Made by a program: the position numbers and the translations under genes. From assembly GCF_001194135.2 (NCBI RefSeq), contig NC_068982.1, positions 37,464,004 through 37,528,003 of the forward strand: a stretch of DNA of 64,000 bases, read 5' to 3'. The notes beneath the pieces were generated by a model. It ran no database searches, had not been told where the DNA came from, and saw only the letters and a program-made list of their open reading frames with translations. Below are positions 39,222 to 63,060 of the stretch, piece by piece; positions within the stretch are counted from its first letter, which is position 1, and the number at the start of each line of letters is the position of its first letter. Source of the DNA: Octopus bimaculoides (lineage: Eukaryota).

Positions 39222-39231
39222 NNNNNNNNNN

Positions 39232-39265
<34 letters not shown>

Positions 39266-39689
39266 GTTATTTCATTAAGATCACAGTCATTGTAATTACT
39301 GAAATTGATATTTATACATCAGATAATTTTAAGTTTATTTTTTAATGTTTCACTTGATACCCTTTCCCACCCCTCTCCTATTTTCTTATATATATATATA
39401 TATATATAAAAGAACTAGACAAAAATAATTGATAATTTCTTTTAAATAATGAAATAATCTTTCATGTACAATGATTTATTTCTATTCAGCTTGTCTGTAG
39501 TTTACCGAAGAGATAGATTGAGAGAGAGAGAGAGAGAGACTGCAGATATTGCCAGAATTAATATATTGGCATATGCACAACGTGTATGTGTGTGTTTATA
39601 TATAGAGAGAGATACACACATATACAACATGCGCACATACACTATCAGATTTGTTATCCTCCATTAAGTTGTTTTGTTTTAAGAGGAAC

Positions 39690-40115
39690 AACAGTTACAA
39701 GTCGAGCGAACTGCTTTCTATTGCTGTATTATTGCTTGTTTTGCAGGACCGATAGCCAGCTAGCAAGCTAACTGACAGCAGCGGGTCTGGTTTATAATCA
39801 GCTATTATTAGATTGGCTGGTCGACTTCTACCACGTACTACTACCCAGTCTTAAACAATTTATGTAACTTCTGTCGAAAATCTATCTATCCAAATTATCC
39901 TCAACTGTAACAGATCTTTGTAAATTATATTTTGAAAACGATTCAGCGTTTGTGTATCTTTGTAATTCTTTTGCTGGAAAAAAATATATAGAAAAAAAAG
40001 ATACCTCTGAACCTGTACTATGGGAAATTTTCTGCACTATGAGAAAAAATCTATTTTATTGAATATGTATTAACTGTCGTTAGCCAACCTGACAAAGCCT
40101 CAACAAGATGGCGAC
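39690..40115 (+). promoter_or_regulatory. Candidate promoter/5'UTR of the recombinase-domain exon
   Basis: CpG-enriched patch at 39700-39860; YY1-type CAAGATGGCG overlapping the start codon (40104-40113); possible acceptor ttaactgtcgttag ending at 40083. Confidence 0.5.
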
Positions 40116-41652
40116 TGAGTGGCATAAGGTGGTCCAACCTAGTAGTAATCTGACTGTTGTCGATAATTCAAGTAAACAAACTACTGAAGATAAACACTGT
40201 CAGAAAACGAAAGATAGTACTCAATGGGGGGTACGAGTATTCACCGATTTTTGCAATGAAGTTGGTTATAATGTGGAGTCTGCGACCCAAGATGTGTCAT
40301 TATTATGTCAGGTATTGAAGCGATTATATGCTGGAGCGCGAACAAAAAAATGTGAACTTTATCAGCTCACAGCTTTCCGTTCTCTTCGTTATGCACTCAA
40401 ACGACACTTTGAGGAAACTCTCAATCTGGATATTATTAAAGGAGATGCTTTCGTCGAAGCGAACGAATCCTTTGTTTTTATGGAGAAGCGTATTAAAGCC
40501 GAGGGCAAAGGCCTGATACGACATTACCCCCCTGTCGAAGAGCAAGACATGGCTCGTTTAAAGGAATATTTTAAAGCAAACATGCAGAATCCAACTCCAC
40601 GGGAACTTTTGGAGTATGTTTGGTTTATTTTGCAATATTACATGTGCAGACTGGGAAGAGATGGACAGACAGAATTGAAAATAACTTCATTTGTTATTCG
40701 GACTGATGCTCAGGGAGAGCGGAGCATTGTTCAAAATGAATCTGAACCTCTGGATGGAAACGGGGAAAATGATGAGGAATTAGCTGGAGGGCTAATACCA
40801 TCGTTGAAAGGAGATGTGCTCTGTCCGGTGAGGGCATACGAGTTGTATATTTCTAAGCTGCATCAGGATTTTGATAGACTTTTCCAAAAACCTAAAAAAC
40901 TGGTTGATTCTAGTCAACCGTATTGGTTCGATCGCATTCCGTATGGTAAAACTCCTCTGGGTGGTATGATGCCTACTCTAAGCCACAAAGCAGGACTGTC
41001 CAAACGTTACACTAATCACAGTTTGAGAGCTACGGCTATAGAGAAATTACTGTGGGGTGGCATAAACAGAAAAGATGTTCGTGCCATCAGTCAGTTATTC
41101 GGACAGCCAACATCTGTTTCACAGAGAAAGAAGATGGCATCTATTCTTAGTAACATTGCTGGAGAGCAAAGTACATCAGCAGTAGCAGCACCCTTCTTGG
41201 AAGAGGCTCGATTAAATTCTAAGATCACGTCTAACAAAAGGGTAAATAATTTCAGAAATGAATTTCAACAACTCTCAAATAATTCTGCTTCCTTATCGCA
41301 GAAAAAGAATATTAATCTCCTCACTCCATCAGCAATATCATCTCTAAATACTTCGTGTTTACCAAAATCTAACACTACGAGGCCGCCTCTTTCAACAACC
41401 GGAGATTCTAGCGAAAAATCTGTCAATTGGAGAGAACCAGTTACAAACAGAAGACAACAAATAAGTTCCAGTGAGGCAAAACACAACTTACGGTGTTTAC
41501 AAAGTTTACATTTTGGAAGAGGGAGAGAATCGAAAGAAAAAAGTTCTAGCAGAATTGAAACTCAGGAAGAGAATCGTGTTGCCGACCAAAGTTCAGAGAC
41601 ATCCTCCTTTATGATTACAGATGTGCATTCTTGCGCCAACTCTTTCACGTAA
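40108..41652 (+). CDS. Crypton-derived tyrosine-recombinase-fold (DUF3504-like; KCTD1/KIAA1958/ZMYM/QRICH1-type) module, 514 aa if unspliced; phase-2 donor after 41648
   Basis: Intact 1545-nt ORF: TQWGVRVFTDF, LKRLYAGAR..K.ELYQ, YYMCRLGRDG, LCPVRAYELYISKLH, FQKPK, PYGKTPLGGMM, KRYTNHSLRATAI, QRKKMASILS, then an S/N-rich tail. The end reads TTC AC|GTAAGC. Confidence 0.9.
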   Translation: MATEWHKVVQPSSNLTVVDNSSKQTTEDKHCQKTKDSTQWGVRVFTDFCNEVGYNVESATQDVSLLCQVLKRLYAGARTKKCELYQLTAFRSLRYALKRHFEETLNLDIIKGDAFVEANESFVFMEKRIKAEGKGLIRHYPPVEEQDMARLKEYFKANMQNPTPRELLEYVWFILQYYMCRLGRDGQTELKITSFVIRTDAQGERSIVQNESEPLDGNGENDEELAGGLIPSLKGDVLCPVRAYELYISKLHQDFDRLFQKPKKLVDSSQPYWFDRIPYGKTPLGGMMPTLSHKAGLSKRYTNHSLRATAIEKLLWGGINRKDVRAISQLFGQPTSVSQRKKMASILSNIAGEQSTSAVAAPFLEEARLNSKITSNKRVNNFRNEFQQLSNNSASLSQKKNINLLTPSAISSLNTSCLPKSNTTRPPLSTTGDSSEKSVNWREPVTNRRQQISSSEAKHNLRCLQSLHFGRGRESKEKSSSRIETQEENRVADQSSETSSFMITDVHSCANSFT

Positions 41653-42324
41653 GCATAACTTTTACACGATCGTCCCCAGTCTCAAGATTTTTGTTATACA
41701 GAACAATTCTTATATTTTAAAACAAGTCTTTTAATTATGCACACACGCATACACCATACATGCAATAAACACACACACACATATAATGTTTGTATGTCAA
41801 ACCAAAATTATCGCACGTGTTTTCTACGATGGATTCGGGTTGACCAATGTCATGGAGTGGAGGTTGGTAGTCGGAAACTGCAGAGGTCCGTCCTGTGTGT
41901 GTGTGTGTGTGTGTAATGTAGTGTTTGTGTTTATGTACTAGTAATTCAGCCTTGTCACACGCTTATTTCGCTTGAGAAATACTTTAAAGATACATGTGTG
42001 TGTCTAATGTTTAGTGACTTTCACTCTAACAGTTGAATACACTTTGTTGCAACTGACATATATATGTACGTGTGTGGTGGTGCTTTCTTAGAAGGGGTTC
42101 AATGTTCACTTCTCGCTTGTATGTTTCACTTTGGGCCGGAGGAGTGGGGTACCTACCCTTCTTGTTACCAACCACTTTACAGAATGCATTGTGTGCGTTT
42201 TTCGGGGCATCAGAACTAACGACATTGGCATGTCCTCTTGACCCTCCGTTGTTTTGACTGGATGCATTTTATGATGGTACAGTTAGTTTGCTTCGTACCC
42301 TATAAGTACTCACTACGGCACTGT

Positions 42325-42452
42325 CATGGTATTAGCTGTCAGAAGTGAAAGTAGAAAAATCTGACAAGGAACGTTACTGCTGGTTTGAGTTGATTCTTTG
42401 GCTACTGACAGCTAATACCATGACTGGCCGGAGCGAGCTATCTGTCTGTCTG

Positions 42453-42509
<57 letters not shown>

Positions 42510-42944
42510 TTATCTATCACTCGAAAGTTATTGGAACAAATTCGACACCTATATCCATGCGTTTGAAAACACACAGAGTGGTCCCGAACGCGCAGTCGCG
42601 CGTCCGCGCTAGCTAGTCGTGAGTGGTCGATCCTATTATTTTTAAACTTCAAACTTCATTTGTTTTCTATTTTGATAAATTCTCTCTGTTGAAAATTATA
42701 TTTTTATATTTTAAATAATTTGCAATTTCAGAAAATATATTTTTATATTAAATTTGCGTTTTCTAATTTGATAAATTCTACGGACACAGGTGAACGAGTG
42801 ATAGATAGATAGATAGATATAGAGAGATAGTGAGATAGACAGACAGATAGATAGCTCCGGCTAGTCAGTAGCCAAAGAGTCAACTCAAACTAGCAGTAAC
42901 GTTCCTTGTCAGTTCTACTTTCACTTCTGACAGCTAATACCATG
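42325..42944. repeat. Long inverted repeat (arms of about 130 bp plus complementary CT/GA microsatellites) around a CpG-rich core
   Basis: catggtattagctgtcagaagtgaaagtagaa (42325-42356) is an exact reverse complement of 42913-42944; similarity continues through ctgacaaggaacgttactgct..tttgagttga..ctttggctactgac. Confidence 0.9.
42540..42618 (+). promoter_or_regulatory. Candidate non-coding alternative first exon and CpG-rich promoter for a BTB-only isoform
   Basis: Densest CpG cluster of the window (gaacgcgcagtcgcgcgtccgcgc), followed by a consensus donor GTC|GTGAGT (GT at 42619); the start coordinate is approximate. Confidence 0.5.
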
Positions 42945-43973
42945 GTATTCATTCACTCAAGATGTAATGAAGGTGCACTACAAAGGGTAAATTTTGACAA
43001 ACTTGTCCAAATTTACCTTTAAAAAGTGAAAGAGAAGGGGTACTGAGTGTCTGATCAGTTGTCAATGTGTTCTTTATTTTTCTGTGTATAAAGAGAGCAG
43101 TCATCATCATGTTCATCAATATCTGTTGAAAAGTCCTACAGCAAAAACAAAAAAAGCCATCAAAAGCAGTGGTTAAACTACTTCAAATTTATCTCAAATT
43201 TCTCAGATATATACTTGGTTGTGTATGTATATATCTATTACTTCAACGTGCGGCTGACAATACAGTTCGTCTAGCCTTTACATATAAATTCTATTTGTGT
43301 TTAATTTAAATAGCAATTTACTGTAAGTTCTTTTTGTGGGCAGAAGAATAATAGAGTACTTGCCCATCAAATGAGTGGTTAACAAACTGTGGAACATGTC
43401 AGGATAATCTCCTTTATTATTCCGAGTACTTGAAGAATAAAAAAATATATTCACCACAGCAAAAAGCTTAAAAAATGTAGTTTGTCTACTTGAAATTTAT
43501 CTTAGGTTTTCTAATCATACACTGCTTAAATATTTATATCTACACCAACCATGCTGGTATGAATTGGTGGTCAGCATGGTTTAAGTTAGTACATTTGAGG
43601 GTGCTGCTATTGTAGATGGGTTGGAAGACTATATCTCACTTGTTGGTTTCATTCTCAGCTTGGTTTCTATGACCAAATGCCCTTCCTTGTCCCAACTACT
43701 TTTCAGAATGTATTGAGTACTTTTTTCAAAGCATCAGTGCTTCAGAGGTAGCTATGTCCATGACATGACTGAAGAAACCTCTTGACTCCATGGTTTCTTG
43801 CTCATGAACCTGTTTGTAGAGTGGGAAGCATTAAGGATAAGGTAAACAGATATGGATAATAGTCATAAGAAGGGTAAGTGAGAAGGGTACTCAGTATTCT
43901 GAAGCAAGTATGTACAATCAGTGTATTGTGAGCAAGAGAATAGAGCAGTAACAGTGGCAAGATGATCCATGTG

Positions 43974-44008
<35 letters not shown>

Positions 44009-44546
44009 AAGGATATGTGGGTGAAAAGAAACAAGAGTATGGTGGCAGGCAGAGTGAATAAGAAGAGGGAAAGATGAAGGTTAGAGTAAAGTCTACTGGA
44101 CATAATAGGTCCAATGTTGTGTGGTCTCCTAAAGATGGGTTAACAAATGGTGAGTATGGGGGCCTATACAAATAGGCAGATAAGGATGATGGGAAAAATG
44201 AAAGTGTACTAGGTAGAAGAGGTTGGGTGATAAGGATGGTGGGAGGGGTCCCATACATATGAATGGCTAGGGGTGTCAGAGAAATGAAATAATGTCACAG
44301 TACAGAAGAAACAGTGATAGTCAACTAGGCAGTAAATATACCTACACACCCATGCAAACAGATACACATAAAATATGTTATACCTCTCAGTCTGTATCAT
44401 TACCATTATCCTTGTGAATTTCAATTTGCCAAGCTTACATTGCTGAATAGGTCTTCTCCAACACTGCATATCACCAATCAACACTGTCCTTTGTCGTCTC
44501 TTGCATAAGGTTTCACACAATTTCCATCTACAAAATATCACTCAAT

Positions 44547-44901
44547 CGTGGCACTCCGTTGGTTACGACGACAAGAGTTCCAGTTGATCCGATCAATGGA
44601 ACAGTCTGCTCATGAAACTAACATGTAAGTGGCTGAGCACTCCACAGACACGTAGTTCTTGGGGAGATTCAACGTGACACAGTGTGTGACAAGGCTGGCC
44701 CTTTGAAATATAGGTACAACAGAAACAGGTTGAAAGAGTGAGAGAAAGTTGTGGTGAAAGAGTACAGCAGGATCTCCCCCCCCCCCCGCTGGAACCTCGT
44801 GGAGATTTAGGTGTTTTTACTCAATAAACACTCACAACACCTGGTCTGGGAATCAAAACCGCGAGTCTGCTACCCTAACCACTGGGCCATTGTGCCTCCA
44901 C
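44547..44901 (-). mobile_element. tRNA-derived SINE, family C, with a 10-bp target-site duplication, inserted in a reverse family-A SINE
   Basis: ATCACTCAAT at 44537-44546 and 44902-44911; minus-strand head tgtggaggcacaatggcccagtggttaggg...gattcccag. Confidence 0.88.
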
Positions 44902-45638
44902 ATCACTCAATAGACATTCAGTAAACCAAGACTGAGGTAAAAGACACCAACCTAAAAGTGTTGAACTCAAAATGACATGATTAAAAAGCAAATTTCTTAA
45001 CCTAAAGGTTATATATATGTATAATTTTATACATGAATAATTTTATATGTCTGTTTTTAAGTTTATTTGTGTGCATATGTATAAGTGTGCTCAAAACATT
45101 TTGCTGGAGTTCTAGACTAGTAACATCAAATTTCTTGTAAGTTAGTGACCATGGAGAGGATGTGAACCTTAAGTTGTAGTGGGCAGGACATCACACATTT
45201 CTATGACAATGAAATACTGTCACTTGTGTAGTTTCCTCACTTGCCAAAGCACATGGAAAGTATAGTTTATATATGTGACTATACTTCTATTTTTGTTTGT
45301 GTGTGTGTGTACTATTATTCTCAACCTTTATTACAATCTTTTCATCCTCCTGTGTTCCACACAATTCTATTTTTACCCTATTTGAATTAGTCTTTCCGAA
45401 GCAAGTAGTAGTTACTGGTTAGACATTTTATGTCCTTTAATAACTATTTATTAGCTAACCCTAATTCTAAAATATGTCTATCTTTGATCTCTGTTAAACT
45501 CTGTTGCACTTCCATTATTACCTATACTGTTTCTCTCTCTAAGTCATGTACACTTTCACCCAGGTATATATATATATGTGTGTGTGTGTGGATTTTTTAT
45601 GCTTCTTTTATTTTTCAAAATTAAGATAAAGTTCTTTT

Positions 45639-46050
45639 TTAATCTAAAATATACTCTCCTTCATTTTTTACAATGCTCTTCCATCTATCTGGTAGATTTG
45701 CAAGGCCCTTCTTCCAAAATTCACTTGTCTGTGACAAAAAATACTCCTCCAGTACTGTTCTAACCTCGTTTACAGAGTTCATATTTTTTCCATCCAAATG
45801 ATTTTGAAAACTGTGGAATAAATGATAATCAGATGGAGCAATGTCCAGCAAATATGGTTGGTGGGGGATTGTTTCCCATTCAAACTGCTCCATCCTTTGG
45901 AATGTCATCCTTGCTGTTTGTGGCCGAGCATTATCCTGATGGAAGAACACATTTCATCTTGAAACCAAAGATGGTCGTTTTTCTTCTAGCGCTGGTCGTT
46001 TTTCTTCTAGTAGTTTTGTTCACTCAGAATTGTTTGTAACTGTTGCATAA
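45639..46050 (-). mobile_element. mariner (DD34D) transposase remnant
   Basis: FHQDNARPQTA...HQPYLLDIAPSDYHLF...LPDRWKSIVKNEGEYILD*. Confidence 0.92.
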
Positions 46051-47444
46051 TTAAAGGCCCTGATTACAGTAAGTCAGCTTCTGTAATAGAACAACCAGAC
46101 TTGTGCTAAAACATTTTTGGGGTCATAGGCTTAATAAAAAGTACACTAGCTCTGAGTGCATTTAGTGTAGTTGTTTTTGTTGCAAAGTCCAGATCTTCAG
46201 GTTTGTGGATGGCACCAATATCTTGAGGTACAACTTCCAACTGCATCTGCCATTGTGTAGTACTACTTCATTACTGCATGTGTACATGTTGAAAAGGTTT
46301 TCCAGTGGGCTTGTCACTAGATACCATAGGAAACTGAAAATTTGAGTATCATATTGGGAAGCTGCCCTATCACATGGCACATAGTCGTATATTTTCTGGA
46401 ACCTGTGCTCAACTAGTTAAGTAGTTTGAGTGACTTTCCTCATTGACCACTAAATCAGTTCTTCAATCTTGCCAGTTGAGAAACCTCTGCAAATGTCCTA
46501 GGCAATGCTAATTCTCCTATGATTAGCTTATAGAAAAGTAACTGCAATATTCCATCAGAATATACACGCTCAACTGATTTTCACAAAATTAGCTTTTACA
46601 AACCACACAAAAAACTTGCAGAATGTCAGGTATGTCTTCCATCTGAAACATGACTCTGTTGCATTCCTTTTAAAAAACATACAAAGTATCTTGTTTGTCT
46701 CTCATTTTTCAAGATGATTTATACTTCACCTCTTAGACGCTATATCTCTACATCATTGATAACCCTTTGTACTTCTTTTGCTTTTAATCCACGTAGCCAT
46801 ATGTAAGGATGGATTTTAGGCATATACCTAGGACTTTACCATCTTTTAAAAAGTTAAGAAAGGCACTTAAATAAAACAGCCCTAAATACATATGTCTGGA
46901 AAAGATGTGATGGTCACAATGGAGTGCTTTTAATCACAGATCTGCTGGATCAGAATTGACCCAGATAAACAACAATGATTATATAATGAATGCAAATCAT
47001 GTCCAGTCTGTTTAAGCTTATCTTTCACCTGTTAACATTTATAGTCCTTAATAATGCATTAGTAACGAGAAACTTTCCAAAATCTGCTGTCTTGGCCACT
47101 TTAGGCATATCTTCAGGACTAAACTAAATAGGTTGCAAAGGAATTACAGCTCTCTCACACTGATCAAGGTTACTTCACTCATACAATTCTCAACAAAATC
47201 TCTATACATACATAATTGGCATACTAGCAACAATATAACATGGGAAAATTTCTCAGAGTTGTCTTCTGTATGAAAAAACAAAGCATAACTAGGGATTAAC
47301 ATAATGTAGTGAACCTAAAAAAAATGTTACATCAATTAAAATTAAAAATTACGCTGAAGAAAATCATTAGTGTGAATAATAATAATTATTGTCAAAGCAA
47401 GGAAGACAACTCTGGAGTCCAAATTTGTTGAAAATTGTTGTATC

Positions 47445-47790
47445 ATCTTGTACTTGTTTCAGTCTTTGGACTATGGCCATGCTGGGGGTACTCCCTTGAA
47501 GGGTTTAGTCAAGCAAATCGACCCCAGTACTTATTTTAAGCCTGTTACTTATTCTGTTGACCCCTTTTTGCCAAACAGTCAAGTTATAGAAACATAAATA
47601 AACCAACACCAGTTGTCAAGCAGTGGTGGGGAACAAACAAAAACACAAAAGCACACACATGTGCAATAGGGTTCGTTCAGTTTCCATTTATGAAATCCAC
47701 TCACAAGGTTTTGGTCGGTCTGGAGTTATTGTGGAAGACACTTCCATAAGGTGCCACACAGTGGGATTGAACCCAAGACCTGCTACACCT
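47445..47790 (-). mobile_element. SINE family A, reverse
   Basis: tcttgtacttgtttcagtc...ggccatgctgg...gtgccacacagtgggattgaaccc. Confidence 0.85.
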
Positions 47791-48405
47791 GCACCTATAC
47801 TTTGATCTTTGGTATATACAGTGACAACTCTAGAAATGTTTTGATCTTAACAGGTTTCTTTAGCTGACCGTAATCTTACAGGCCTTAAAATGAATGTGAA
47901 AATATATAGAAACAAACACTAATACGTAGTTCCTGAGTATACTCTGCATCATGCTCAAACATTTGAACAGATCTCTCAGTTATAATGCAGTTACTAGTGC
48001 TTCATAGAAATCTGCAATTACTGTCCAATTTTAACACCAACTTACAAATACCTAGGCTAATGTTTAAAGCACTTCACTTGGTTAATCCTTTTCAAGCAGG
48101 TTATTGAGTGTAGTTTGTTGTTCAACAGACCTTTAATCAAAGACATTGCAACTAATGCATTTTCAGACAGTAGAATATACTCTGACAGGAATCTACCTAC
48201 TATACCTAGCAGGCTAAATTACTGTGTAGCTGTTCAGTTAGCTTATTGGTTGAACAACTAGGTGCAATATAAAGACCTATTGCTCTAGATATCCTCACCT
48301 CTGCCTAAAAGATGACCACAGAGTGATCTCAGACATATGTGATTGTTGATGTTGTTTCACCTCAGGTCAGCCTTGATCATACATACTCATGTATGACTGG
48401 AAGTA

Positions 48406-48700
48406 TTGCAGCCATGATTCATCATCATTATTTAACACCTGGCATGGATTGGATGGTTTGACAGGATCTGACTAGCCTAAGAGCTGTATTGGTCTCCAAT
48501 GTCATTTGCAGTCATGATTCATGGTCTCCAATGTCATATTGCAGCCATGATTCATCATTATTTAACATGCTGGCATGGGTTGGATGGTTTGACAGGATCT
48601 GACTAGCCTGAGAGCTGCATTGGTCTCCAATGTCATCTTTGACAAGGTTTTTGTGACTGGATGCCCTTCCTAATACCAACCACTTTACAGAGTGCAATGC
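48406..48700 (-). mobile_element. RTE-type tail with a local ~100-bp tandem duplication
   Basis: 48406-48505 and 48538-48634 repeat attgcagccatgattcatc...ggtctccaatgtcat. Confidence 0.75.
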
Positions 48701-49827
48701 CTCATCTTTTGCATATCTAAGACTGCATTATCCAATGTATCTGGAAGCTACTTTTGTAGCAGGTTGAAACAACCAAATAGTCACCCTTTAGTTGTATAGG
48801 ATGTTCTGTGGGAGTCTTGGTCCAGTCTGTTATTTGTATATCTTTTATTGTTGTTTAACCCTAGGTCTGCTTTGACCAGGTAGATGTATCGTTGAAGGCA
48901 TTCCAACTATGACTATCCCACCTTTTTTCATACATAGTATAGCTAAGACTCTATTATCCAAATGTGTCATGTTTGTTAAGCTGATAAAGTATTTGTTGGA
49001 TATGTGGCTACTATTTCTAGCAGGTCAAGGAATTGTGTAGAGGTTTCCTATTAATCCAGTGTTTCTTGTTTCATGTTAGAGCCAGCATTTTAAAAGTTTC
49101 TTTTCTCATATAGAATTGAATTGTTTGTTAATGTGTGAATATAAAGAAATAAGTCAAATCCTTTGCTTCTATTGATAAGTTATATAGTGCCTGAAAGGAC
49201 TCTTTCATTGCAGAAGCCATCATGTATTCCTTGAATAAGATTTGTGAATTATTGTGGTTGAGTGAAGTTATCTGAATTCTTTTTGCAAGTTTCAAAGAGG
49301 AATATGTGAGTTGGTGATATCAAACATAAGTCCTTTTCAGGGATTTTGAAGGCATGTATGAGAGAGTGTTGAGTTCTTGTAATGCTGTTTTTTGGGGGGG
49401 GGTTTTGGTTGAATTTTTAATATAAATTTGCCCAGTTAACACATTCTTTGAATTTAGTATTGTTAGTAAGAGAACTTGATGCTTTGTTTGCTTGAACCCC
49501 ACTCTATCAAGCAGACTTCTTATCAAAGGTGTTCTAGACAAGATTATCCCATCATGTCTGTAGATATAATGTATCTAGAACTACTTTATCCAATGTATCC
49601 ATTTTGTTTATGATGGTATACTATTTTATGAGGGAGATATAGCAAGATGCATGACCTTACAGAAGCTTTTCTGTTCATTCATGATATAAGTTGAGTGCAG
49701 TGTGTTCTTCAAGCTCTTGGTATCTCTGGTGTATGCATGGGATTTTGTTGGGTCCTGAGGTTTTTGAGTTTATTGTGTATTTTCTATTTCTGTCTTTGTA
49801 TAACTTTTAGTTATTACTATTATTATT

Positions 49828-50045
49828 AAGGCAGCAAGCTGGTAGAATCGTTAGCGCACTGGACGAAATGCTTAGCAGTATTTTGCCCGTCACTACGTTC
49901 TGAATTCAAATTCTGCCAAGATCGACTTTACCTTTCATCCTTTCGAGGTCGATAGAATAAGTACCAGTTGAACACTGGGGTCAATGTAATCAGCTCATCC
50001 CCTTCCCCCAAATTGCTGCTCTCGGGAGCAAAATTTGAAACCATT
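49828..50045 (+). mobile_element. tRNA-derived SINE, family B, followed by an RTE tail (50048-50185)
   Basis: aaggcagcaagctggtagaatcgttagcgc...ttctgaattcaaattc...cctttcatcctttcgaggtcgatagaataagtaccag. Confidence 0.88.
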
Positions 50046-51067
50046 ATTGGCGTAAGGAAGGGCATCTAGCTGTAGAAACTTTGCCAGATCAGATTGAACC
50101 TGGTGCAGCCTTCTGGCTCACCAGTCCTCAGTCAAACCATCCAACCCATGCTAGCATAGAAAGCGGACGTTAAATGATGATGATGGTAATGATTATTTTT
50201 GTTTTTTTTTCTAAAGTGTTTGATAAGCAAGCTTGCTTGTTGGGGGTATGCATACGTAACTTAAAGCTGTTATGATGTGATATTGTGTAACTTACAGATT
50301 TTGCTAATTTGTGTCCTGTTTTACTGCTTGTTTTGTGATTTATCATAGATACATATTTTTAACAGCTTTCTTTTCTCTGGTTCATTTTCTATTTAGTTTC
50401 TCAATGAAATTTAATTCTGTTATGTATGGTATTAGTGTTTTGTTTAAGGTGGTTGTTCCTGGTTTTTTATCAGGCTGACTATGTCACTTGGGTAATTTGG
50501 ATTTTATATTTTTATGCATCTTTGTGGGATGAATGTATGGAATGAATTATCTATGTTTATGTATCATTGTGTCTTGCAATGTGATTGCCATTCTATTTTA
50601 AGGAATTTTCTGTCAGGTATGGGCAACCTATTTTGAGAAGCAGACTGCATGAGATGTTCATCATCAGGTGGGTCACACTACTAAAAAGACTGAAGGCAAT
50701 TTTTCATTTAGGTGTGCCATTCAGAAAGTCCTGTAGGCTGCAGTTTACCCATGACTACTCTATGATTACTTGACCTGGTAACAGCCTAATTTCTTCCAAA
50801 CTACATCCTATTGTCTTTAAAAGTGGGTTACCCTGGATAATACAATCATGGATTGTATTATCTACTGGAAAAAGAGATGGGTTGGTTTCAGCTGAAATAC
50901 CTTCAGAATGATGGTCATGAAAGTAAAACTTAGTTGTGCCCTTAAAAGTCTATGTATGTTCTAAAACTGTTATTTGGAATGGGTGTAATCTTTTTAGTTG
51001 TTACAATAACTAAATTAGGATGCGGCTAGTTTATTCTTTGCAAGCATTAGTTACATTATCATCATTG

Positions 51068-51510
51068 TGCTGTGCGTGAGAAGACCCGGCAAGCCAAGTA
51101 AGATCGTTGCCAGTGCCCCGGGACTGGCTCTTGTGCGGGTGGCACATAAGATGCACCATTTTGAGCATGGCCATTGCCAGTACCGCCTGACTGGCTTCCG
51201 TAGGATTTTCGAGCGAGATCGTTGCCAGTGCCCCTGGACTGGCTTGTGCGGGTGGCACATAAAAGACACCATTTTGAGCGTGGCCATTGCCAGTATCGCC
51301 TGACTGGCCTTCGTGCAGGAGACACGTAAAAGCACCTACTACACTCTCTGAGTGGTTGGCGTTAGGAAGGGCATCCAGCTGTAGAAACTCTGCCAAATTT
51401 AGATTGGAGCCTGGTGTTGCCATCCGGTTTCACCAGTCCTCAGTCAAGTCGTCCAACCCATGCTAGCATGGAAAGCGCACGTTAAACGATGATGATGATC
51501 ATCATCATCA
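51068..51510 (+). mobile_element. RTE 3' end (3'UTR units and tail)
   Basis: gctgtgcgtgagaagacccggcaagccaag ... gcatggaaagcgcacgttaaacgatgatgat; close to 10843-11427. Confidence 0.93.
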
Positions 51511-53405
51511 TCTCATTTAGGCAATTATACAGCTACTGGATAGTCTAGACAAAACTAATTAAATGTCAGGTCCTGGCATTTGTATGCCTTAATTACTGGA
51601 ATTAATAAATCTAGATTCAGGGTAATGTTAAGTGTCTGAAGTTGTTTTGTTGAGTTAAATAACTTTTTGTTTATTGAATTTGTGATAAGATTATTATAGA
51701 CAGATTGCAATAAACTTTGTGTTGATTGAAATGCAGGGTCCATTCAGAAAGGTGAATAAATGTTGTTTTAACCCCAGATTAACCCTGAATGAGTAGATAT
51801 CTATTCAAAGCTGTTCCATCTATGATCAACCTATTTTTATTCAGGCATAATGTATCTAAATCTACATTGACCTGTGTCTTTCCTCTTTTTAAGATGTGAG
51901 AGATTTCACTGTCATTTCTTGTAGGCTCAGCAACAAATGGTAGTGAACAATTTTAAAGCTGATCTAAGTTATTGAGACAGGTTTGACAGTATGTTTATTA
52001 GATTATTCAATAATTTTCTTCTGTAGTTTACTTATATAACATTTGTTTATCGTATTTTTTTTATTCACTTGCAAGATCTTTCATGTCCATGTATTTCTCA
52101 TTTTCAAAATTGAAACAGTTGCATAAGATAATTATAAATGATACTTAAGTAATCAGTTACTGTTACATAGCATTCGCAGAAATATGCAACCATGTTTTAC
52201 TTCTGTTGACATAACATTTAAAAGTGAAATCAAAGCATTTTATTTCATACATCATGAGCAGTATGGTCACTGCGAATCTATACATATTCTATCTATAAAA
52301 GTGAATGCAGTGTTTCTGTCTGGAATCCTAAGCTCTTACTTTATCTATTTCCCCCTATTTTTACTTGCTATTGGAGCAAGCTTTTGATTTATGGTAGCAT
52401 TATGTTGTAAAATATTGTTGACAGAATTTTATATTAAATGTAAATTTCACTATTCATGTATTATGTGCTTATATATGTGCATGCACACACACATCTATAT
52501 TTACTGTTATGTCTCAAGCTACTGCTATCTAGCACCTTTGGATGATCTCTACTCAACCACTACACAACTGCTACTCGACTTCTACTCAACACTCCTACCA
52601 TGGCCAGACTACCTCTATTTATATGTCTTGGGAGATCCTACTTCTTCGCCGGGGGGCATCGACACAACATTTACAGTTATACATATGTGTGTGTGTGTAT
52701 ATAAGTAAAAGAAAACATAGAAGTGATAGTTTCTTTATATAAAAGTCTTTGAATTTTCTTAAAGAAATGAGATGAAATATTACTTAAATTCTTTTAGTAT
52801 GTTTGTTTTGTCTAGCACTGGAGAGTCAGTTTCTGTTTTTATAACACACACATATGAGAGAGGAAGAGATTTCTGTGAATACATTTCATTAATGTTCTGT
52901 AACTTTAACATTTGTTTGAACATGGTATTGCTTTACACATTATATTATGTTTATTTATTTCTCTGTGACCTATACACCAGAAAAAGGTATGAAAGATGTT
53001 GTTCTGCTCTGGGCTGATAAAGTTTGGTAGAATGTAGCAGAATAATGTATGATATAATTGTCTTTGGTGTGATGATTTTCAAATAAGTGGCTTAGCACTC
53101 ATCTCATCTGAATTGTTTCTAAAGCTGGATAGATGAATAATGTTGCAATTGAGTTTTACTTCATGTTTTAAGCCTCTTCATTTTTATTTTGAGCATTTTG
53201 TGGTAGTTATTGTAAAAATGAGACCTGACTACAAAATAAGCTGGGTGAGGGTAACAGTTACTACCCTTCAGCTATGTTTGGTGCAAATATTTGTGACTAC
53301 TAAAATGTTGACAATTGAATTGCAATATTTTAGTTTATTTTTAATGTTTTTATCAATTTATATCCAATATCCATCGTATTATATTTCATTTCTCTTTATA
53401 TACAG

Positions 53406-53568
53406 TGAGCAGAATACGCCAACAACTTTTATGAAAACAGTTGAAAACCCTACTCATTCATATGTTGTGCACAAACATCAAGGCCACATGCTCTCCAATA
53501 TGGCCAATCTTTGGAAAAAAGGTAAACTCTGTGATGCTTCCATTGGAAATGGAACAATGAAAATTATG
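53406..53568 (+). CDS. BTB/POZ exon A (phase-2 acceptor, internal ATG at 53431, phase-0 donor)
   Basis: ttctctttatatacag|T GAG CAG AAT...ATG AAA; (x)EQNTPTTFMKTVENPTHSYVVHKHQGHMLSNMANLWKKGKLCDASIGNGTMKIM; donor ATG|GTAAGT. Confidence 0.9.
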
Positions 53569-53769
53569 GTAAGTATTAAATGTTAAATCATGATTATCTA
53601 ACTCTGTATCTATTCATGCACACTTGTTTTTTTTTTTATTATTTAAGTATTTCCCTTTAGTATGTTAAGATCAGCTGCTAATCCAAATCATGAGTACAGA
53701 CATTATAGCACATAACAATAAGTATTTTAAAGCCAAGTTTCCCTGCTAAATTAGGGATTAACTTTATGG

Positions 53770-54880
53770 TCCCACTGACAGTCTTCTTCATTATTAATAT
53801 GAGATAATAAATATGAGACAAATGACAGATCCTTTCAGGGTGAAGGCCCTGCTTGATATGTAGAAATGCTGTTGGAAGAAACTCCAAATGGTGTACTCAA
53901 TACAAGTTATGGACGCATAAGAGGTGCAGTGATATCACTGGGAAATTAACAGAGAAAGTAGTCTTTACATGTGGCTGATGTGCAAGTACACTAAACACTA
54001 GGAATGTTAAAAAAAATAGACTCCTTCAAATGTCAGGAGGTGATCCTTAGAAGTAGTTGACAGTTTCCGTTACTTAGGTGAGGTTGTTCTGAAAATATAG
54101 CTGCTAGAATAAGAATGCGCTGGGTAAAGTTCAGAGATCTGCTACCTCTGTTAGTAATGAAGGGTCTCTCTCTCAGAGTAAAAGGCAGATTGTATGATGC
54201 CTGTGTATGAACATTTATGCTACGTGGCTGTGAGACATGAGCTGTGACTATTGAGGACATGTGAAGGCATGAAAGAAATGAAGCCAGATGGGTAATGTCA
54301 GTGTGCATATACGACTGAGTATAAGTGATTTGAGAGAAAAACTGGGTATACAAGGCATCACATGTAGTGTCCAAGAGAGAAGACTGCATTGGTATGGTCA
54401 TGTAATGCTTATAAATGCAGGTAGATGCATCAAGAAATGCTGATCTCTTATTGTGAAGGGGTAGACCCAGGAAGACATGGGATAAAGTGGTGAAAAAGGA
54501 TCTTCAAACCTTGTGCCTCACTGAGGGACGACAGGGAACTGAGACTTCTGGTGATTTGCTGTGCTTGAGAAAACACATCAAGCTAAGTAAAATTGTGGTT
54601 GTCCTTGCATACAGGCATGACCTCTGCATCCCTTTTCAGCTGAGTGATCCTAATCTTGCGGGCTCATGGGTGCTGGTGCCACATAAAAAGCACCTATGCC
54701 AGTACCATGTAAAAGCACCCAGTACACTCTGTGAAATGGTTGGCATTAGAAAGGGCATCCAGCTGTAGAAACCATACCACAACAGACATGGAGCTTGGGC
54801 AGCTCTTCAGCTGGCTAGCAACTGTTAAACCATCCAACCCATTGCCAGCAAAGAAAACAGATGTTAAAAGATGATGATAA
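53770..54880 (+). mobile_element. Decayed RTE in the BTB intron
   Basis: Degenerate PHD-like region, ARIR..WVKFRDLLPLLV.KGLSLRVKGRLYDACV, and the tail gcattagaaagggcatccagctgtag. Confidence 0.88.
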
Positions 54881-55887
54881 TATATCATATTGATACTTTG
54901 TAACATTGGAGTCCACAATGTGAAGTGGGTAAAAGAAAAATTAAATGTAATGAAAGCAATCAAAATTTAAAAATTGAAATTGATAATAATATTATTATTT
55001 TAAATCACTTGCATTTGCCAAACAAGCCAGTGAATTGTTTTCAGTGTAATCAACAACGGATTTGTTTGAAATTATGAATAGTGTTTATGATATCTGAAAT
55101 CCCATGGGCTCTTTGACTGGTTAAGAAAAAAAGAAAAAGAAAGGTAACTAAAACTAAACCATGTAAACAAAGAGACAACTATGTATGTGTATATATTATC
55201 ATTGTTTTAATGTCCACTTTTCCATGCTTTCATGGGTCAGACAGAGTTTATTGAGGTAGATTTTCTATGGCCAGATATCCTTCTTGCTGCCAACCCTTAC
55301 CTGTTTCTAAGCTTGGTAATATTTCACCACAGCCAGACATGTTTCCACAGAATATTGAAAATAAAGGACATTCAATTACAGCAATCACGCAACGTCATGA
55401 CATGAAGACACAAGTTTACACACATATGAAGACACAAGTTTACACACATATACATGTGTATGTAACATGCATGCACATACGTACATACATAAATACATAA
55501 TTTTTATTATTTTTTGTGAGACAGATTCTCAACATACCTTGTATTAGAAGTATATAAAGTCCTATGTTTCTAGCCTATGTAAATTAAGAGCAAGTATCTG
55601 AAGACATGTAATATTGTGATTATTCATGATCATGCATTATTTATTGGAATACAAAGGATTATTCATCTCCTCTTTTCTTCCTTAATTCTAAAATAGTTTC
55701 CTAATTTCCTAAGTCAATAATGTGTTAATGTTTCCAATGAAAGAAATGTGTTATGTCTCTGTACACAAAATATATTTTTAAATGATTTTTTTTGGAGGGG
55801 GGGGGGTTCAGTTAGGCTTTTAATGTGATTCTTTGAAATATTCTGCTTTTATTGTTTTTCTATAAATATGTGTTCTTTCTTTTCTAG

Positions 55888-56868
55888 GTTCACAAAGTTG
55901 TGTTGATTGCTCTTAGCCCACAACTTTTAACATTGCCAAATGCCACCGTAACATCGGGTTGTTTCCAGTTGACATTTTCTCAGGATATTGGTGGTGATGC
56001 TTTATGGGCATTTGCTAAATATATGTACGAAGGTGTTGTCTCCCTTAATGAGGAGGTATTAGAGGATATGGAGCATATTGCGAAAATCCTTGGTTTAAGT
56101 GATCTATTAGATATGTGTAAACTTTATCGGAAGCAGGTTTTGAGTTCTATTGACAATCCTGTCACAACTAAGGCCTTAATCTCTCAATCAACTGAATCTC
56201 CAGGCATTATAAGGGATGCCATTTCAACAGAGATTGTTAATACAATGGATACAATGCCTAAAACTGATGGCCCATCTTTATCAACTGGTGTATCTTTCGT
56301 GGGTCTACCCAATAGTGATATTACTCCATCAATCTCGAAACCAGTGCAACAGTTACAGAACTTAGCTACAGAATCAATGACAAATCAAATACAATTCCAA
56401 ACAAAACAATCAGTTCCTCCGGTGATCCTTTATTCAGCTGATAAAGACTCTTCAGTTTCAAGCTATGCCAATGATTCTGTAGGATTAAAACAAGAACCAT
56501 CAAGTCCCTTGAAAAAAAGGTGCAGTAAAAAAGATTTCTTATCTTCTTTTCCTTCAAGACACTCAGACACACATATTGTTGTCCACGATGATTTATCAGA
56601 ACCTTGGCAACCACATTCTTACTGTGATAATGAAGACCCAAAAAGTCCTCCACCTCCAAAGCGTCTAAAATCTTCAGAACTACCTGAAGACTCTTTATCT
56701 AATTTATCTCACTCAAATACTGAAGATTTCAGTCCTCACACTAAAAGTGCCAAAGACTCTTATCCTATCAAAATTGAACTTGAACGAGACTGTAACAGTG
56801 ATTTAGAAACTTCTGGGATTCCTTATGTTGTGTCGTTAATTCAAGCCAAAGGCCTGGACACGACTTGA
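55888..56868 (+). CDS. BTB/POZ exon B (rest of BTB plus S/P/T-rich tail); terminal coding exon
   Basis: ttctttcttttctag|GTT CAC AAA: VHKVVLIALSPQL...FAKYMYEGVVSL...IAKILGLSDLLDMC completes a ZBTB/KLHL-type BTB. The tail has LKQE, IKIE and PPPPKRLK; TGA at 56866-56868. With ATG 53431 the protein is 372 aa. Confidence 0.93.
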   Translation, partial: VHKVVLIALSPQLLTLPNATVTSGCFQLTFSQDIGGDALWAFAKYMYEGVVSLNEEVLEDMEHIAKILGLSDLLDMCKLYRKQVLSSIDNPVTTKALISQSTESPGIIRDAISTEIVNTMDTMPKTDGPSLSTGVSFVGLPNSDITPSISKPVQQLQNLATESMTNQIQFQTKQSVPPVILYSADKDSSVSSYANDSVGLKQEPSSPLKKRCSKKDFLSSFPSRHSDTHIVVHDDLSEPWQPHSYCDNEDPKSPPPPKRLKSSELPEDSLSNLSHSNTEDFSPHTKSAKDSYPIKIELERDCNSDLETSGIPYVVSLIQAKGLDTT

Positions 56869-57060
56869 ACTTGTTTAATTGGCAAAGGATTCAGAAAAGA
56901 ATGTTATAAAGTCATATATCAAATAGTTATCAATGATCTCAATTCATCTCATTTTAATTGGAAGTTCCAAGTAATATCCAGTTTTGTTTTTTTCTCTTCC
57001 AAATGAGTTCAGTTAAGAAACCTTTTTCTACTTTTTCTTTCACCTTGAACTTTTTCTGCT

Positions 57061-57066
57061 AATAAA
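57061..57066 (+). terminator. First AATAAA after the BTB stop (others at 58081 and 58309)
   Basis: Hexamer in an AT-rich putative 3'UTR; usage unknown. Confidence 0.35.
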
Positions 57067-58599
57067 TTAATGATCTGAGAAAAATATAATATCAAGAGAT
57101 TGCAACTTTTCCTTACAATTAGAGATTAAAATGACGAAAGATTTTTTTCATCATCTTAACATGGTTTCTTTCAAAACATTTAAACTGTCTGAACACCTCT
57201 TTTAAGGAGAAACAAGAGCTATATATTTTTCTTCTACTCAATTAGGTCACTTTAGCATTTGTGTCACCAGATGACAGACATGTCAAACAGATAATGATCA
57301 GCGTTAAAAATTGAACAATAATATTTTCAAAGTGGTAAAAGCTAGATAATGTATGTGGCTACACAATGGAGTGCTATTATTTTATTTATAATTTCAGCTT
57401 TATCAACAGTTCCTCATTTAAATTCGTTGGAAGGTTGGTCTTAAATAGTATGAAGAGTTATGAAATATTTCAGTCTAAAGCCTCTGGATTCTTTTAACTT
57501 TCAATTTACTCTGCTTTTATCTTTTATTTTCCAAGCATTGTTTCCAATGATTGTAATTTAAGATTTTTAAAAGTGAATAACAAATATATTACTTATGTGA
57601 TCAGCCTTTGGTTTGGAATTATATCTGGATATTTAGTTTCACAGCATACAAAAGTTAGCTCTCATATTGAAATTTTAATATTTTAATTTATTAAAGATTT
57701 TTAATTGTGTGCTATTATTGTTAACAATGGCTTTGTCTGGATTTTTTTTTCAGCAATCCACTGGTGCCTAGCAACTGATAAATAGATTAATATATAGTGT
57801 ATTCCATAGTTTGTATGTTGAACTGTGGATAAAAAAATATAATTTTTTTTTTTTTTATTTGTATCGAAACCAGTGATGATATGCATGTAAAAATTGTTAT
57901 GGTTAATTTAGCAAACATTCTGTAACTGGATCATTTCATTGAAGGAAACATGGCATAAATATATTACATTTTTTACATTATTGAAAAGTTTACTTTGGTA
58001 AAATAAACAAAATAATCCATTGTCGGAATTTGCTTGTATTTTATTTAAATGTTTGCAACATCTTGCAATTTAATTTGTCAAATAAAATCTGGAACATTTT
58101 TACTAATGAAAATTATAACCAACTTTATAACTAAATGGTTGCATGAAGATTGAGGACAAAATGTCTTGTTGCTGTTTTTGTTGGATTAATAATTCATACT
58201 TGTTACCTGAGGGTTATTGTACCAATCTATATTTTTTTCCTTTTGATAAATTCTAAGATGCAATCTTTAAAGTAACAAACCATCAAATTTGTCATTGAAA
58301 CCAGTTCAATAAACTGCTTCATATCTGCAACAAATACATTTGAGGTCACACCAGAAGAGATTATTAAACTGAAGTTTGTACAATGCGACAAAAAGTCAGA
58401 CAACACAATATAGATTTGTGCATGGAAATGTCATTATGAGAAATATAATCCTTTCTATTATAAGCACAAGGCCTGAAAAGTATGAGTAGTATAATGAAAG
58501 CCAGCCCTGTTAGGTCTGAGTGGAACTGAAAGAAAGATCAGCTATATGTATTAGTTTCAGCATAATTGTTGCATGACTCTGCTGAAACTAACCTGAGAT

Positions 58600-62029: not shown

Positions 62030-63060
62030 ATTAGGGTGCTATGTTAGCAGGTTGAGTGCCCAAACCCCCCGTTTTCGGATACGGAGGTCCCGCAAAATTG
62101 CCAAAAATTGGCATTGCAAAAAAATTGCCCATTTTTCTGAAAGTTATGAGTGAAGAAAGCTGATTAAAGTGAATTTTCCGAAACTTCTCACTCCACTCTC
62201 GGAAAAAAAAATTCCACCACAAATTGTAATATAATCGGAATCTACACCATTTGAGGAGTATTTGTAGAAAATTTCATTCCTGGAAGTTATGAGGCAACAG
62301 ATTCGTGAGAGAGTATACGATTAGGAAAACCGAGTTTTCATAGAAAGAATTTAAAATCAGGTTTGAAAAACCAAAACAGACACACACACACATACCTACA
62401 CTGCCCAAATTGTTGAAATTTTGGTTTCATAGGTATGAAGTCCGAAAAACAAAAGAACACTTTCATCACATTTGACCATCTTAACATCTGCTCAATCAGA
62501 AATTGTAACCTAAAGCCGAGTCTTGTTCCGAGTGCTCAACAATTAGGATGGAAATGCTTTCTTCTCAAAGTAATAATAGACTTAATTTTAAAAAATTCTT
62601 TTGCCAAAACCCCTCGTTTTCGTATGTGGAGGTTCCGGAAAATTGCCGAAAATCGGCATTGTTAAATTCCCCCACTCCCTTTCCCCACCAAATTCTTCAA
62701 TTTTGACTTTTTCCCCCAACACTAACCCAAACCCTAACCCTAACCATAACCCTAAAACCCTAATCCCAACCCTAAAGCCTTATCCATAACTACAGAAATG
62801 TTTTGAAATTTTTGTCCGAATCATAATGTCCGTATTTTTCCGCATATTTAGAAGAAAAAAAAATTCTTAAAAACAAAATTTACAAAAATTTTTGGAAATT
62901 TTTTTCAGAATCATGATCTCCGTATTTTTCCGCATATTTTCGGAAAAAAAAAAATTCTGAAAAAAGTTAAAAAATGAAGGAANNNNNNNNNNAGCCGAAA
63001 AGGCGGGCTTTGGGTCGAAAATTTTTTTTTAAGGGTTGGTTTCGGGGGTGGGGGAGGGGC
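62030..63060. mobile_element. Composite repeat with internal direct repeats and degenerate (CCCTAA)n
   Basis: 62054-62120 resembles 62604-62665; 62810-62870 resembles 62905-62970; ccctaa-like array at 62718-62790. Confidence 0.6.

Follow-up and report, generated by a model that had tools for sequence, protein, structure and literature searches.

A Crypton-derived recombinase exon in a THAP-BTB gene of coleoid cephalopods, a probable transposon capture independent of vertebrate KCTD1b

Introduction

We present here an analysis of a 64,000-nucleotide (nt) stretch of the Octopus bimaculoides genome (contig NC_068982.1, positions 37,464,004 to 37,528,003 of the forward strand, RefSeq assembly GCF_001194135.2; hereafter the window), focusing on LOC106873459, a gene in which an exon originating from the tyrosine recombinase of a Crypton transposon is spliced to exons encoding a BTB domain. 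A previous interpretation made from the letters alone (the sequence-only reading) had placed a recombinase-BTB protein of 894 amino acids (aa) at 40108-56868, and had suggested that its architecture arose independently of the long isoform of vertebrate KCTD1. The recombinase-BTB model stands at this position, while a second isoform carrying a THAP zinc finger, the true extent of the gene and a family of paralogous proteins had been missed.

Results

Structure and transcripts of the recombinase-BTB isoform

The features of the gene are given below, with positions counted in the window.

12585-13079, forward strand: coding part of exon T1, THAP zinc finger and start of the THAP-BTB isoform (transcript from about 12451)
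32175-32575, forward strand: exon T2 of the THAP isoform (joint with T1 in RNA contigs of X1, X9 and X13)
39618-40107, forward strand: 5' untranslated region of the recombinase isoform, colinear with the genome
40108-41648, forward strand: recombinase coding exon, aa 1-514, a single exon from a CryptonA tyrosine-recombinase open reading frame (supported by reading frame, homologues and structure model)
40189-40587, forward strand: core-binding-like N-terminal domain, within the recombinase exon
40588-41163, forward strand: catalytic-like domain, within the recombinase exon
41086-41118, forward strand: ISQLFGQPTSV, position of the catalytic tyrosine (from alignments; identical in O. sinensis)
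41164-41601, forward strand: fast-evolving linker, within the recombinase exon
41602-41648, forward strand: conserved motif SSFMITDVHSCANSFT at the donor, within the recombinase exon
41649-53405, forward strand: intron from the recombinase exon to E2, rich in repeats and transposon fragments (RNA depth there comes from multi-copy repeats)
53406-53568, forward strand: shared exon E2, first part of the BTB, which begins at 53506 (gene model, contigs)
55888-56868, forward strand: coding part of shared exon E3, rest of the BTB (to 56133) and low-complexity C-terminal region (gene model, Pfam, alignment)
56482-56505, forward strand: conserved tail motif LKQEP, in E3
56584-56625, forward strand: conserved tail motif DDLSEPWQP, in E3
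56818-56844, forward strand: conserved tail motif PYVVSLI, then the stop codon, in E3
56869-58000, forward strand: 3' untranslated region, to 58000 or further (X1 contig)

Once joined on the forward strand, the segments 40108-41648, 53406-53568 and 55888-56868 form an open reading frame (ORF) of 2685 nt encoding 894 aa. In the genome, the ORF of the first coding exon (40108-41652) is closed by a canonical donor (CAC/gtaagc), past which read-through meets a stop at once, and the remaining splice sites of this three-exon model are also canonical (cag/TGAG, ATG/gtaagt and tag/GTTC). The product is 100% identical to XP_014776313.1 (LOC106873459; UniProt A0A0L8H191, 'BTB domain-containing protein', Octopus bimaculoides), and its O. 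sinensis orthologue also has 894 aa.

Both junctions (41648 to 53406, and 53567/8 to 55887/8) were recovered with zero mismatches in contigs assembled from three runs of three studies (X1, 4315 nt; X5, 3607 nt; X9, 3676 nt), and the same two junctions also occur in contigs of X13 and X14. These runs are labelled only 'RNA?', and spliced RNA is the source of the contigs because exon-exon joints can arise no other way. In the raw RNA-seq run X24, the exons are covered at low depth. The exact ORF, the RefSeq identity and the RNA contigs thus bear out the splice product predicted from the letters, and the fusion transcript is present.

At the 5' end, contigs of the recombinase isoform start at 39618 (X1), 39850 (X5) and 39981 (X9), and the RNA contigs show no joints and no loose ends in 39560-40400, with no splice into the recombinase exon from upstream. 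A gap of 10 N (39222-39231) lies just upstream of this 5' end, and the assembly of the promoter region may be incomplete.

THAP isoform and extent of the gene

A profile search returned an Argonauta hians protein, 'LOC115230799 isoform X2' (P0206), with both BTB and THAP domains in Pfam. Its N-terminal 296 aa map to 12585-13079 and 32172-32576 of the window and its remainder to E2 and E3, the identity between T1 and this THAP-BTB orthologue being 84.8% (tblastn). Contigs of X1, X9 and X13 reach 13079/81 and continue into the first bases of T2, and in X13 the end of T2 is joined to TGAGCAGAATACGCC, the start of E2. Together, 12585-13079, 32175-32575, E2 and E3 yield an open and in-frame THAP-BTB protein of 679 aa, with Pfam scores of 44 bits for THAP and 38.9 bits for BTB. 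The THAP zinc-finger ORF at 12585-13109, some 27 kb ahead of the recombinase exon, is hence the first coding exon of this isoform. The gene consequently spans from about 12.5 kb to beyond 58 kb, the window covering most of LOC106873459, and the recombinase exon is located between T2 (32575) and E2 (53406), within the THAP-BTB intron.

T2 also has an alternative donor at 33046, and this long form stops right after ...SLYG and would give a THAP-only product of 299 aa; the transcript could instead be a decay target. The joint of 33046 to 53406 was found in X13, and contigs of X1, X5 and X9 run through 32576-33046. The acceptor of E2 serves three donors (41648, 32575 and 33046), with depths at the joint in X13 contigs of 280 for the recombinase exon, 73.5 for T2 and 60 for long T2, contig depth being a poor gauge of expression. 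The recombinase form clearly amounts to more than a minor by-product. Moreover, the junctions of T2 and of the recombinase exon with E2 were both recovered in the single run X13, so that parental and fusion transcripts coexist.

In a cuttlefish, the fragment P0205 combines THAP-type upstream sequence with the BTB exons (the THAP domain itself being absent from the fragment), and P0205 and the recombinase-isoform fragment P0019 belong to contigs of equal size (1,177,883 nt). In both major coleoid lineages, therefore, an intron of the THAP-BTB gene harbours the recombinase exon, which is used as an alternative 5' exon. Upstream of the decapodiform locus L001, described below, a stretch of 10 kb showed no THAP exons. 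THAP and CENPB proteins with a BTB domain have previously been noted in Octopus (Mukherjee and Moroz, PMC10027918).

Conservation and selection

A cuttlefish-type recombinase-BTB protein of 903 aa, obtained from transcript contigs (P0020), shares a 90% cluster with fragments from Acanthosepion pharaonis. The decapodiform genomic contig L001 preserves the succession of recombinase exon, E2 and E3, with introns of about 2 kb. Splice positions and phases agree with those of the octopus gene both in L001 and in the decapodiform L002, and the junction motif at the donor is likewise conserved in the two. In all three loci (O. bimaculoides, L001 and L002), the exon precedes these BTB exons, and its last 16 residues (SSFMITDVHSCANSFT) are nearly invariant. 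Across these three loci, the sequences point to a fixed orthologous locus under purifying selection rather than to a mobile copy. Pseudogenisation of exon 3 in L001 was considered and set aside: the frameshift is an extra T in a T-run and P0020 is in frame, indicating a probable assembly error.

Between octopus and decapodiforms, the proportion of synonymous differences (pS 0.70-0.79) is at or near saturation, and that of non-synonymous differences (pN) is 0.09-0.12 in the recombinase and BTB domains and 0.56 in the linker. Between two decapodiforms, the ratio of non-synonymous to synonymous substitution rates (dN/dS) is 0.036 in the recombinase domain, 0.015 in the junction region and 0.355 in the linker. 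Judging from these values, the fusion has been kept under strong purifying selection since before the octopod/decapodiform split.

These data bear on the view that an intronic Crypton, either autonomous to this day or dead only recently, supplies the exon, which would be spliced fortuitously into a chimera without function. The exon is indeed a complete transposon ORF inside an intron, with an apparent 5' end of its own and an immediate stop upon read-through of the donor, and proteins consisting of the ORF only (P0002) have been called in other species. However, octopods and decapodiforms would hardly be expected to share such an element ahead of these BTB exons, with no change in donor position or phase, nor would it be expected to show the low dN/dS of its recombinase domain and a conserved junction motif of 16 aa; in addition, the catalytic Lys and third His are lost in all members of the family and the Tyr in Octopus, and the spliced form is assembled in the runs read at a depth at least equal to that of the THAP form. 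We consequently regard a functionless chimera as very improbable.

Recombinase domain

The recombinase part matches P0007, a PF00589 protein, at E=1.6e-44 and P0008 at E=1.1e-43, and an exhaustive search of the library produced 3366 matches overall, including 1375 at E<=1e-10. Word-index protein searches were insensitive (6, 12 and 18 matches, paralogues not returned), and the exhaustive search was used instead. The nearest non-cephalopod relatives are intact tyrosine-recombinase proteins of 400-500 aa (with RRGRE, KNH, HSLR and GH...Y), with an identity of 30-36% along almost all of the 350 aa. The octopus catalytic-like region scores 102 bits with CryA1_SK and 95 bits with CryA2_SP, two active Cryptons, and about 49 bits with KCTD1.

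An AlphaFold model of aa 1-353 (predicted local distance difference test, pLDDT, 80.2) was compared with solved structures using Foldseek. The best match was the QRICH1 chain of 9hjt ('Zincore (SEPHS1:QRICH1) binding to ZFP91 on DNA'; E=1.5e-7), together with Cre-loxP structures (E=3.4e-7; template modelling, TM, score 0.44-0.47) and, among lower matches, XerA, IntI, Flp and XerH. Because the model matches QRICH1, Cre and other recombinases, the core-binding and catalytic lobes of the recombinase clamp are both predicted to be kept.

By contrast with active Cryptons, whose catalytic set is R-K-H-R-H-Y, the set is not intact in the recombinase-BTB protein. The catalytic Lys, found in 58 of 70 Crypton-like relatives, is replaced by Asp in octopus and Asn in decapodiform orthologues, and the third His (55 of the 70) by Leu and Arg, respectively. 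The nucleophilic Tyr, present in 45 of these relatives, is Phe in octopus and Tyr in decapodiform orthologues; Arg-I and His-x-x-Arg are kept in the octopus recombinase part. The octopus Phe site adjoins an 8-residue deletion relative to the cuttlefish-type RRSDSGLENYGHS. Residual recombinase activity in Octopus was therefore rejected, Lys and third His being lost and Tyr changed to Phe.

The intact Crypton-like proteins P0007, P0008, P0010 and P0011 have a common C-terminal tail of the form ...F.NC.I.(F/I)N..., and MAFFT aligned LPYPV of P0007 to the terminal PYPVSLV motif of the BTB fusions, a match too short to decide on a kinship of the tails.

BTB domain and comparison with KCTD1b

The Pfam BTB profile (PF00651) matches aa 548-650 at 37.5-41.6 bits for a cut-off of 20.5. 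The same scan of the 894-aa protein found no match to BTB_2 (PF02214) at E<=1, no KCTD1-15_CTD (PF20871) and, after the BTB, no C2H2 zinc fingers, BACK domain or Kelch repeats at E<=1; the last 244 aa are of low complexity, interspersed with short conserved motifs. By sequence, the nearest solved structures are KLHL3, ZBTB17, gigaxonin, IVNS1ABP and ZBTB18, and KCTD proteins account for none of the 63 matches. The sequence-only reading had assigned this BTB to the ZBTB/KLHL type from motifs (LCD...VHKVVL and YMYEG) that are indeed present, and its assignment agrees with both the profile classification, which gives Pfam BTB and not BTB_2, and the closest KLHL and ZBTB proteins.

KCTD1b, the long isoform of vertebrate KCTD1, carries a single-exon Crypton-derived DUF3504 before a KCTD BTB and goes back to a Crypton that inserted upstream of KCTD1 in the ancestor of jawed vertebrates, once KCTD1 and KCTD15 had arisen by duplication (Kojima and Jurka, PMC3212892). 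For comparison, the human KCTD1b sequence was taken from the supplement of that study as machine-read text. As in the octopus gene, the N-terminal Crypton-derived exon of KCTD1b is spliced to downstream BTB exons (PMC3212892), and the two proteins have the same domain order, DUF3504 (aa 161-291 in octopus) then BTB (aa 548-650). Both genes also have a second isoform without DUF3504, a degenerate catalytic site and strong conservation. By contrast, the BTB of KCTD1b is of the T1/KCTD type and is accompanied by the KCTD1-15 C-terminal domain (human protein: DUF3504 50.8, BTB_2 61.3 and KCTD1-15_CTD 160.3 bits), whereas the cephalopod proteins combine DUF3504 with a POZ-type BTB (PF00651). The host gene is KCTD1 in vertebrates and a THAP-BTB gene in octopus, the other isoform is BTB-only in the former and THAP-bearing in the latter, and the two belong to different phyla. 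The domain order and the different BTB that had been read from the letters are thus both borne out.

The recombinase parts of KCTD1b and of the octopus protein are not specifically related. With that of KCTD1 as query, three of the four two-domain groups described here rank 136th-192nd of about 200 matches, and the group of P0034 ranks 13th. Neighbour-joining (NJ) trees of the recombinase domain (77 and 87 sequences, 100 bootstraps each), the kind of phylogeny that the sequence-only reading had proposed with KCTD1b included, are star-like, with a deep-node support of 3-32% that leaves the placement undecided. In 31 of 100 bootstraps, KCTD1b and the octopus clade fall within a clade of at most 10 taxa, probably due to long-branch attraction.

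One ancient DUF3504-BTB fusion inherited by both lineages would explain the shared domain order and the CryptonA-like nature of both recombinase parts, and the proximity seen in some bootstraps would be compatible with it. Nevertheless, it would have to accommodate distinct BTB families (PF00651 versus PF02214 with KCTD1-15_CTD), the dating of KCTD1b to the jawed-vertebrate ancestor, a THAP-BTB host in octopus, the low ranks of most two-domain groups in the KCTD1 search and the fact that, among the best 150 library matches, all named two-domain proteins are cephalopod; we thus consider common inheritance extremely improbable. Since BTB family, host gene and phylum differ, with no two-domain intermediates found, and since the recombinase parts show no excess similarity, the comparison of sequences supports an origin of the recombinase-BTB architecture independent of KCTD1b, as had been suggested. 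The grounds for this independence are the BTB, the host gene and the range of taxa, the recombinase trees not being decisive. The two lineages took a similar route, in which a Crypton ORF lying ahead of the BTB exons serves as an alternative first coding exon. The further suggestion that such a pairing is repeatedly selected has behind it two lineages, KCTD1b and the cephalopod gene, and paralogues that may or may not stem from additional captures.

Paralogue family

Beyond this gene, the exhaustive search revealed two-domain matches in three groups among the best 150 of 3366 matches.

P0047 group: O. sinensis LOC115220336, O. vulgaris and O. bimaculoides LOC106879774, 884-897 aa
P0033 group: cuttlefish group of 926-927 aa, from transcript contigs that share a cluster with A. 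pharaonis CAE1321133.1
P0034/P0194 group: transcript contigs with Pfam DUF3504 and BTB, 813 and 862 aa

Among these best 150 matches, P0034/P0194 is the only group left beside the named cephalopod proteins. All groups carry the BTB signature LWKKGxLCDA...VHKxVL, a psi-K-x-E-P motif and a C-terminal PYPVSLV-like motif, and their BTBs score 70-100 bits against each other versus about 30 bits against any solved BTB. Each group has lost a different catalytic subset, Lys and third His being missing in all. At a further locus (L011), only the recombinase exon is present within 10 kb either side.

An Argonauta THAP-BTB protein (P0208, LOC115209932 isoform X6), encoded by a gene of 153 kb, has a BTB 63% identical to that of P0033, and this resemblance hints that paralogous loci also have THAP isoforms. 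The NJ trees cannot tell one capture from several because they are star-like with low deep support. It is possible, as a tentative extension, that coleoids carry a small family of modular loci, in which one BTB and C-terminal body would be combined with interchangeable 5' heads of transposon origin, either THAP (P-element-type transposase) or dead Crypton, the heads having been captured repeatedly or the locus duplicated as a unit.

Several other observations concern the tails and heads of these proteins. The psi-K-x-E-P motif, which has the form of a SUMOylation consensus, occurs in the tails of all paralogue groups and of P0208 as LKQEP, VKQEP, IKSEP, IKTEP, IKLEP or VKTEP. KCTD1 ends with ...IKQEPLD, and this likeness may be a coincidence. 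A reading of DDLSEP as a CtBP-type PxDLS motif was dropped, the Pro being missing. In two Argonauta hians copies of 'LOC115230799' (P0207 and P0030), the linker, junction motif, BTB and tail are kept, and about 200 N-terminal aa of unrelated sequence, carrying Cys/His motifs (CPHCG...; C-x2-C...H-x4-H), stand where the recombinase domain would be. The BTB is the sole domain named by Pfam in these proteins, and their N-terminal sequence has no counterpart in the window; it may represent a further head swap or a chimera of the gene model. Finally, P0032, P0035, P0040 and P0059, proteins of 850-1300 aa from amphioxus, sea urchin, scorpion and spider, each have two stretches matched to the query, which suggests further uncharacterised multi-domain genes of Crypton origin in other phyla.

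Repeats and background of the window

Microsatellites, repeats and assembly gaps are numerous in the window, which consists of AT-rich animal DNA.

6054-6232, 9780-10008, 24661-24983, 28357-28511, 39222-39231, 62983-62992: runs of N (assembly gaps)

Between 39000 and 58000, the RNA differs from the genome by A>G at 50 and T>C at 52 places, versus G>A at 25 and C>T at 23 (X24). This excess of about 2-fold is a pattern of all four runs, with the listed sites mostly in intronic repeats, and could result from A-to-I editing of repeat RNA or from reads of other repeat copies. A-to-I editing of repeat RNA is common in cephalopods. The intronic repeat at 51046-51679, whose ORFs on both strands are internally repetitive, reaches an RNA depth of about 1150-1225 reads in X24 and a contig word depth above 180,000, and is presumably an abundant expressed repeat family.

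On the reverse strand, the ORF fragment 45639-45950 (...FHQDNARPQTA...DIAPSDYHLF...) gave no Pfam match at E<=0.01, and we take it to recall the C-terminal part of a mariner-type transposase. Repeat copies at 5774-6253 and 10393-10875 (forward strand) and at 20095-20484 and 26994-27455 (reverse strand) encode ...RLRWYGHV.RMDEDSCVKKCHTLTVEGTRGRGRPRKTW... and are probably the 3' part of a retrotransposon; no Pfam match was obtained for 10393-10875, 20095-20484 and 26994-27455. More generally, nine intronic or intergenic repeat ORFs had no Pfam match at E<=0.01.

Discussion

Proposed origin and function

We consider it probable that a Crypton was captured by a THAP-BTB gene, giving rise to a nuclear regulator that combines a dead recombinase with a BTB domain, independently of KCTD1b. 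The element would have inserted into an intron of the THAP-BTB gene in the coleoid ancestor or before, and a donor at the end of its ORF would have allowed an in-frame join to the BTB exons, that is to say transposase capture by alternative splicing. The resulting product would act as a nuclear regulator dimerising via its BTB, in which the dead recombinase may direct targeting through contact with DNA itself or, in the manner of QRICH1, through a hold on partners already bound to DNA. A common effector part would be formed by the BTB and tail that the isoforms share (psi-K-x-E-P, DDLSEPWQP and PYVVSLI), and the THAP isoform, built on the same BTB body, may heterodimerise with the recombinase isoform.

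Some points weigh against this proposal. The match to DUF3504 (PF12012, aa 161-291) is borderline, at 28.9-30.5 bits for a cut-off of 29.7, and the case for Crypton homology, solid despite this threshold score, is made by the sequence relatives. A promoter specific to the recombinase isoform is likely, but it is deduced from the contig starts and from the lack of an upstream splice into the exon. The order of events, THAP-BTB first and Crypton second, is read from the exon arrangement and undated. Dimerisation, DNA binding and nuclear location of the product are likewise deductions. Furthermore, the cuttlefish-type orthologue keeps Arg, His-x-x-Arg and Tyr and, judging from these residues, may conceivably retain some residual chemistry.

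The targeting role of the dead recombinase is proposed because THAP, a domain that binds DNA in a sequence-specific way, is the head that takes its place in the other isoform. POZ-type BTBs dimerise, and tyrosine recombinases form C-shaped clamps around DNA and act as multimers. By analogy, the chances that the recombinase-derived head binds DNA directly seem to us about even.

Alternatively, the domain could work as a protein-protein clamp on DNA-bound transcription factors, like QRICH1 in Zincore, with the BTB oligomerising the complex or acting as a Cul3 adaptor. The closest structural match of the model is precisely the QRICH1 chain of 9hjt, and QRICH1, the one domesticated Crypton fold with a solved structure, sits there on a DNA-bound zinc-finger factor. 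Protein-protein interaction is one of the two likely functions of DUF3504 (Kojima and Jurka, PMC3212892), and the Zincore coregulator is cited in PMC13538652. Nonetheless, the DNA-binding nature of the alternative THAP head argues for DNA targeting, as does the whole two-domain recombinase clamp that the model predicts to be kept, and we find the partner clamp rather unlikely.

Relation to known systems

Several domesticated transposons resemble parts of this system. QRICH1, ZMYM2-4 and WOC are, like the octopus domain, domesticated Crypton folds without an active site that are involved in transcription regulation; unlike the octopus protein, they have no BTB, are associated with MYM zinc fingers and CARD partners, and score only 14-17 bits. 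ATF7IP-like fish fusions (P0004 and P0005) also represent a lineage-restricted association of CryptonA with a regulator, 30% identical to the octopus domain, but their recombinase part is C-terminal, keeps GH...Y and has the ATF7IP binding domain (PF16788), not a BTB, as its fusion partner.

Host-transposase fusions such as KRABINER arose through insertion in a host gene, alternative splicing and selection (Cosby et al., bioRxiv 10.1101/2020.05.07.082677), and share with the octopus gene a transposon ORF spliced to host exons, a persisting parental transcript and purifying selection. Those cases involve DDE transposases of tetrapods, mostly a splice acceptor provided by the transposon and a C-terminal transposase, whereas the octopus gene uses a tyrosine recombinase as first exon together with a donor. 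Octopus THAP-BTB and CENPB-BTB proteins (PMC10027918) and ZBTB11, which has an integrase-like HHCC head and a BTB (PMC12062965), associate a POZ-type BTB with a domain derived from mobile elements, as in the octopus fusion, although none of their heads is a tyrosine recombinase.

The organisation of the locus can also be compared with that of the Drosophila genes lola and mod(mdg4), in which alternative DNA-binding modules of the same locus are attached to a single set of BTB exons. In these genes, the BTB is N-terminal and the variable zinc-finger exons are 3' and partly trans-spliced, whereas in the octopus gene the BTB is C-terminal and the variable exons are 5'.

In the open-access literature, we found no description of a cephalopod gene associating a Crypton-derived or DUF3504 domain with a BTB. 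The domesticated Crypton and the transposase capture are of a known kind; the octopus instance, the switch between THAP and recombinase isoforms and the paralogue family appear to be undescribed.

Implications

This gene provides a protostome addition to the short list of domesticated Cryptons, which have so far been mostly vertebrate or pan-bilaterian, and it arrives at the architecture of KCTD1b by way of another BTB family and another host gene. As the parental THAP-BTB and the fusion transcripts are both made, it is one of the rare loci outside tetrapods where a transposase capture is 'caught in the act'. Two heads on one BTB body furthermore constitute a natural experiment on a dead recombinase fold, opposing DNA binding to partner clamping. 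If coleoids do carry the family of modular loci outlined above, their isoforms could heterodimerise via the shared BTB, leading to combinatorial targeting.

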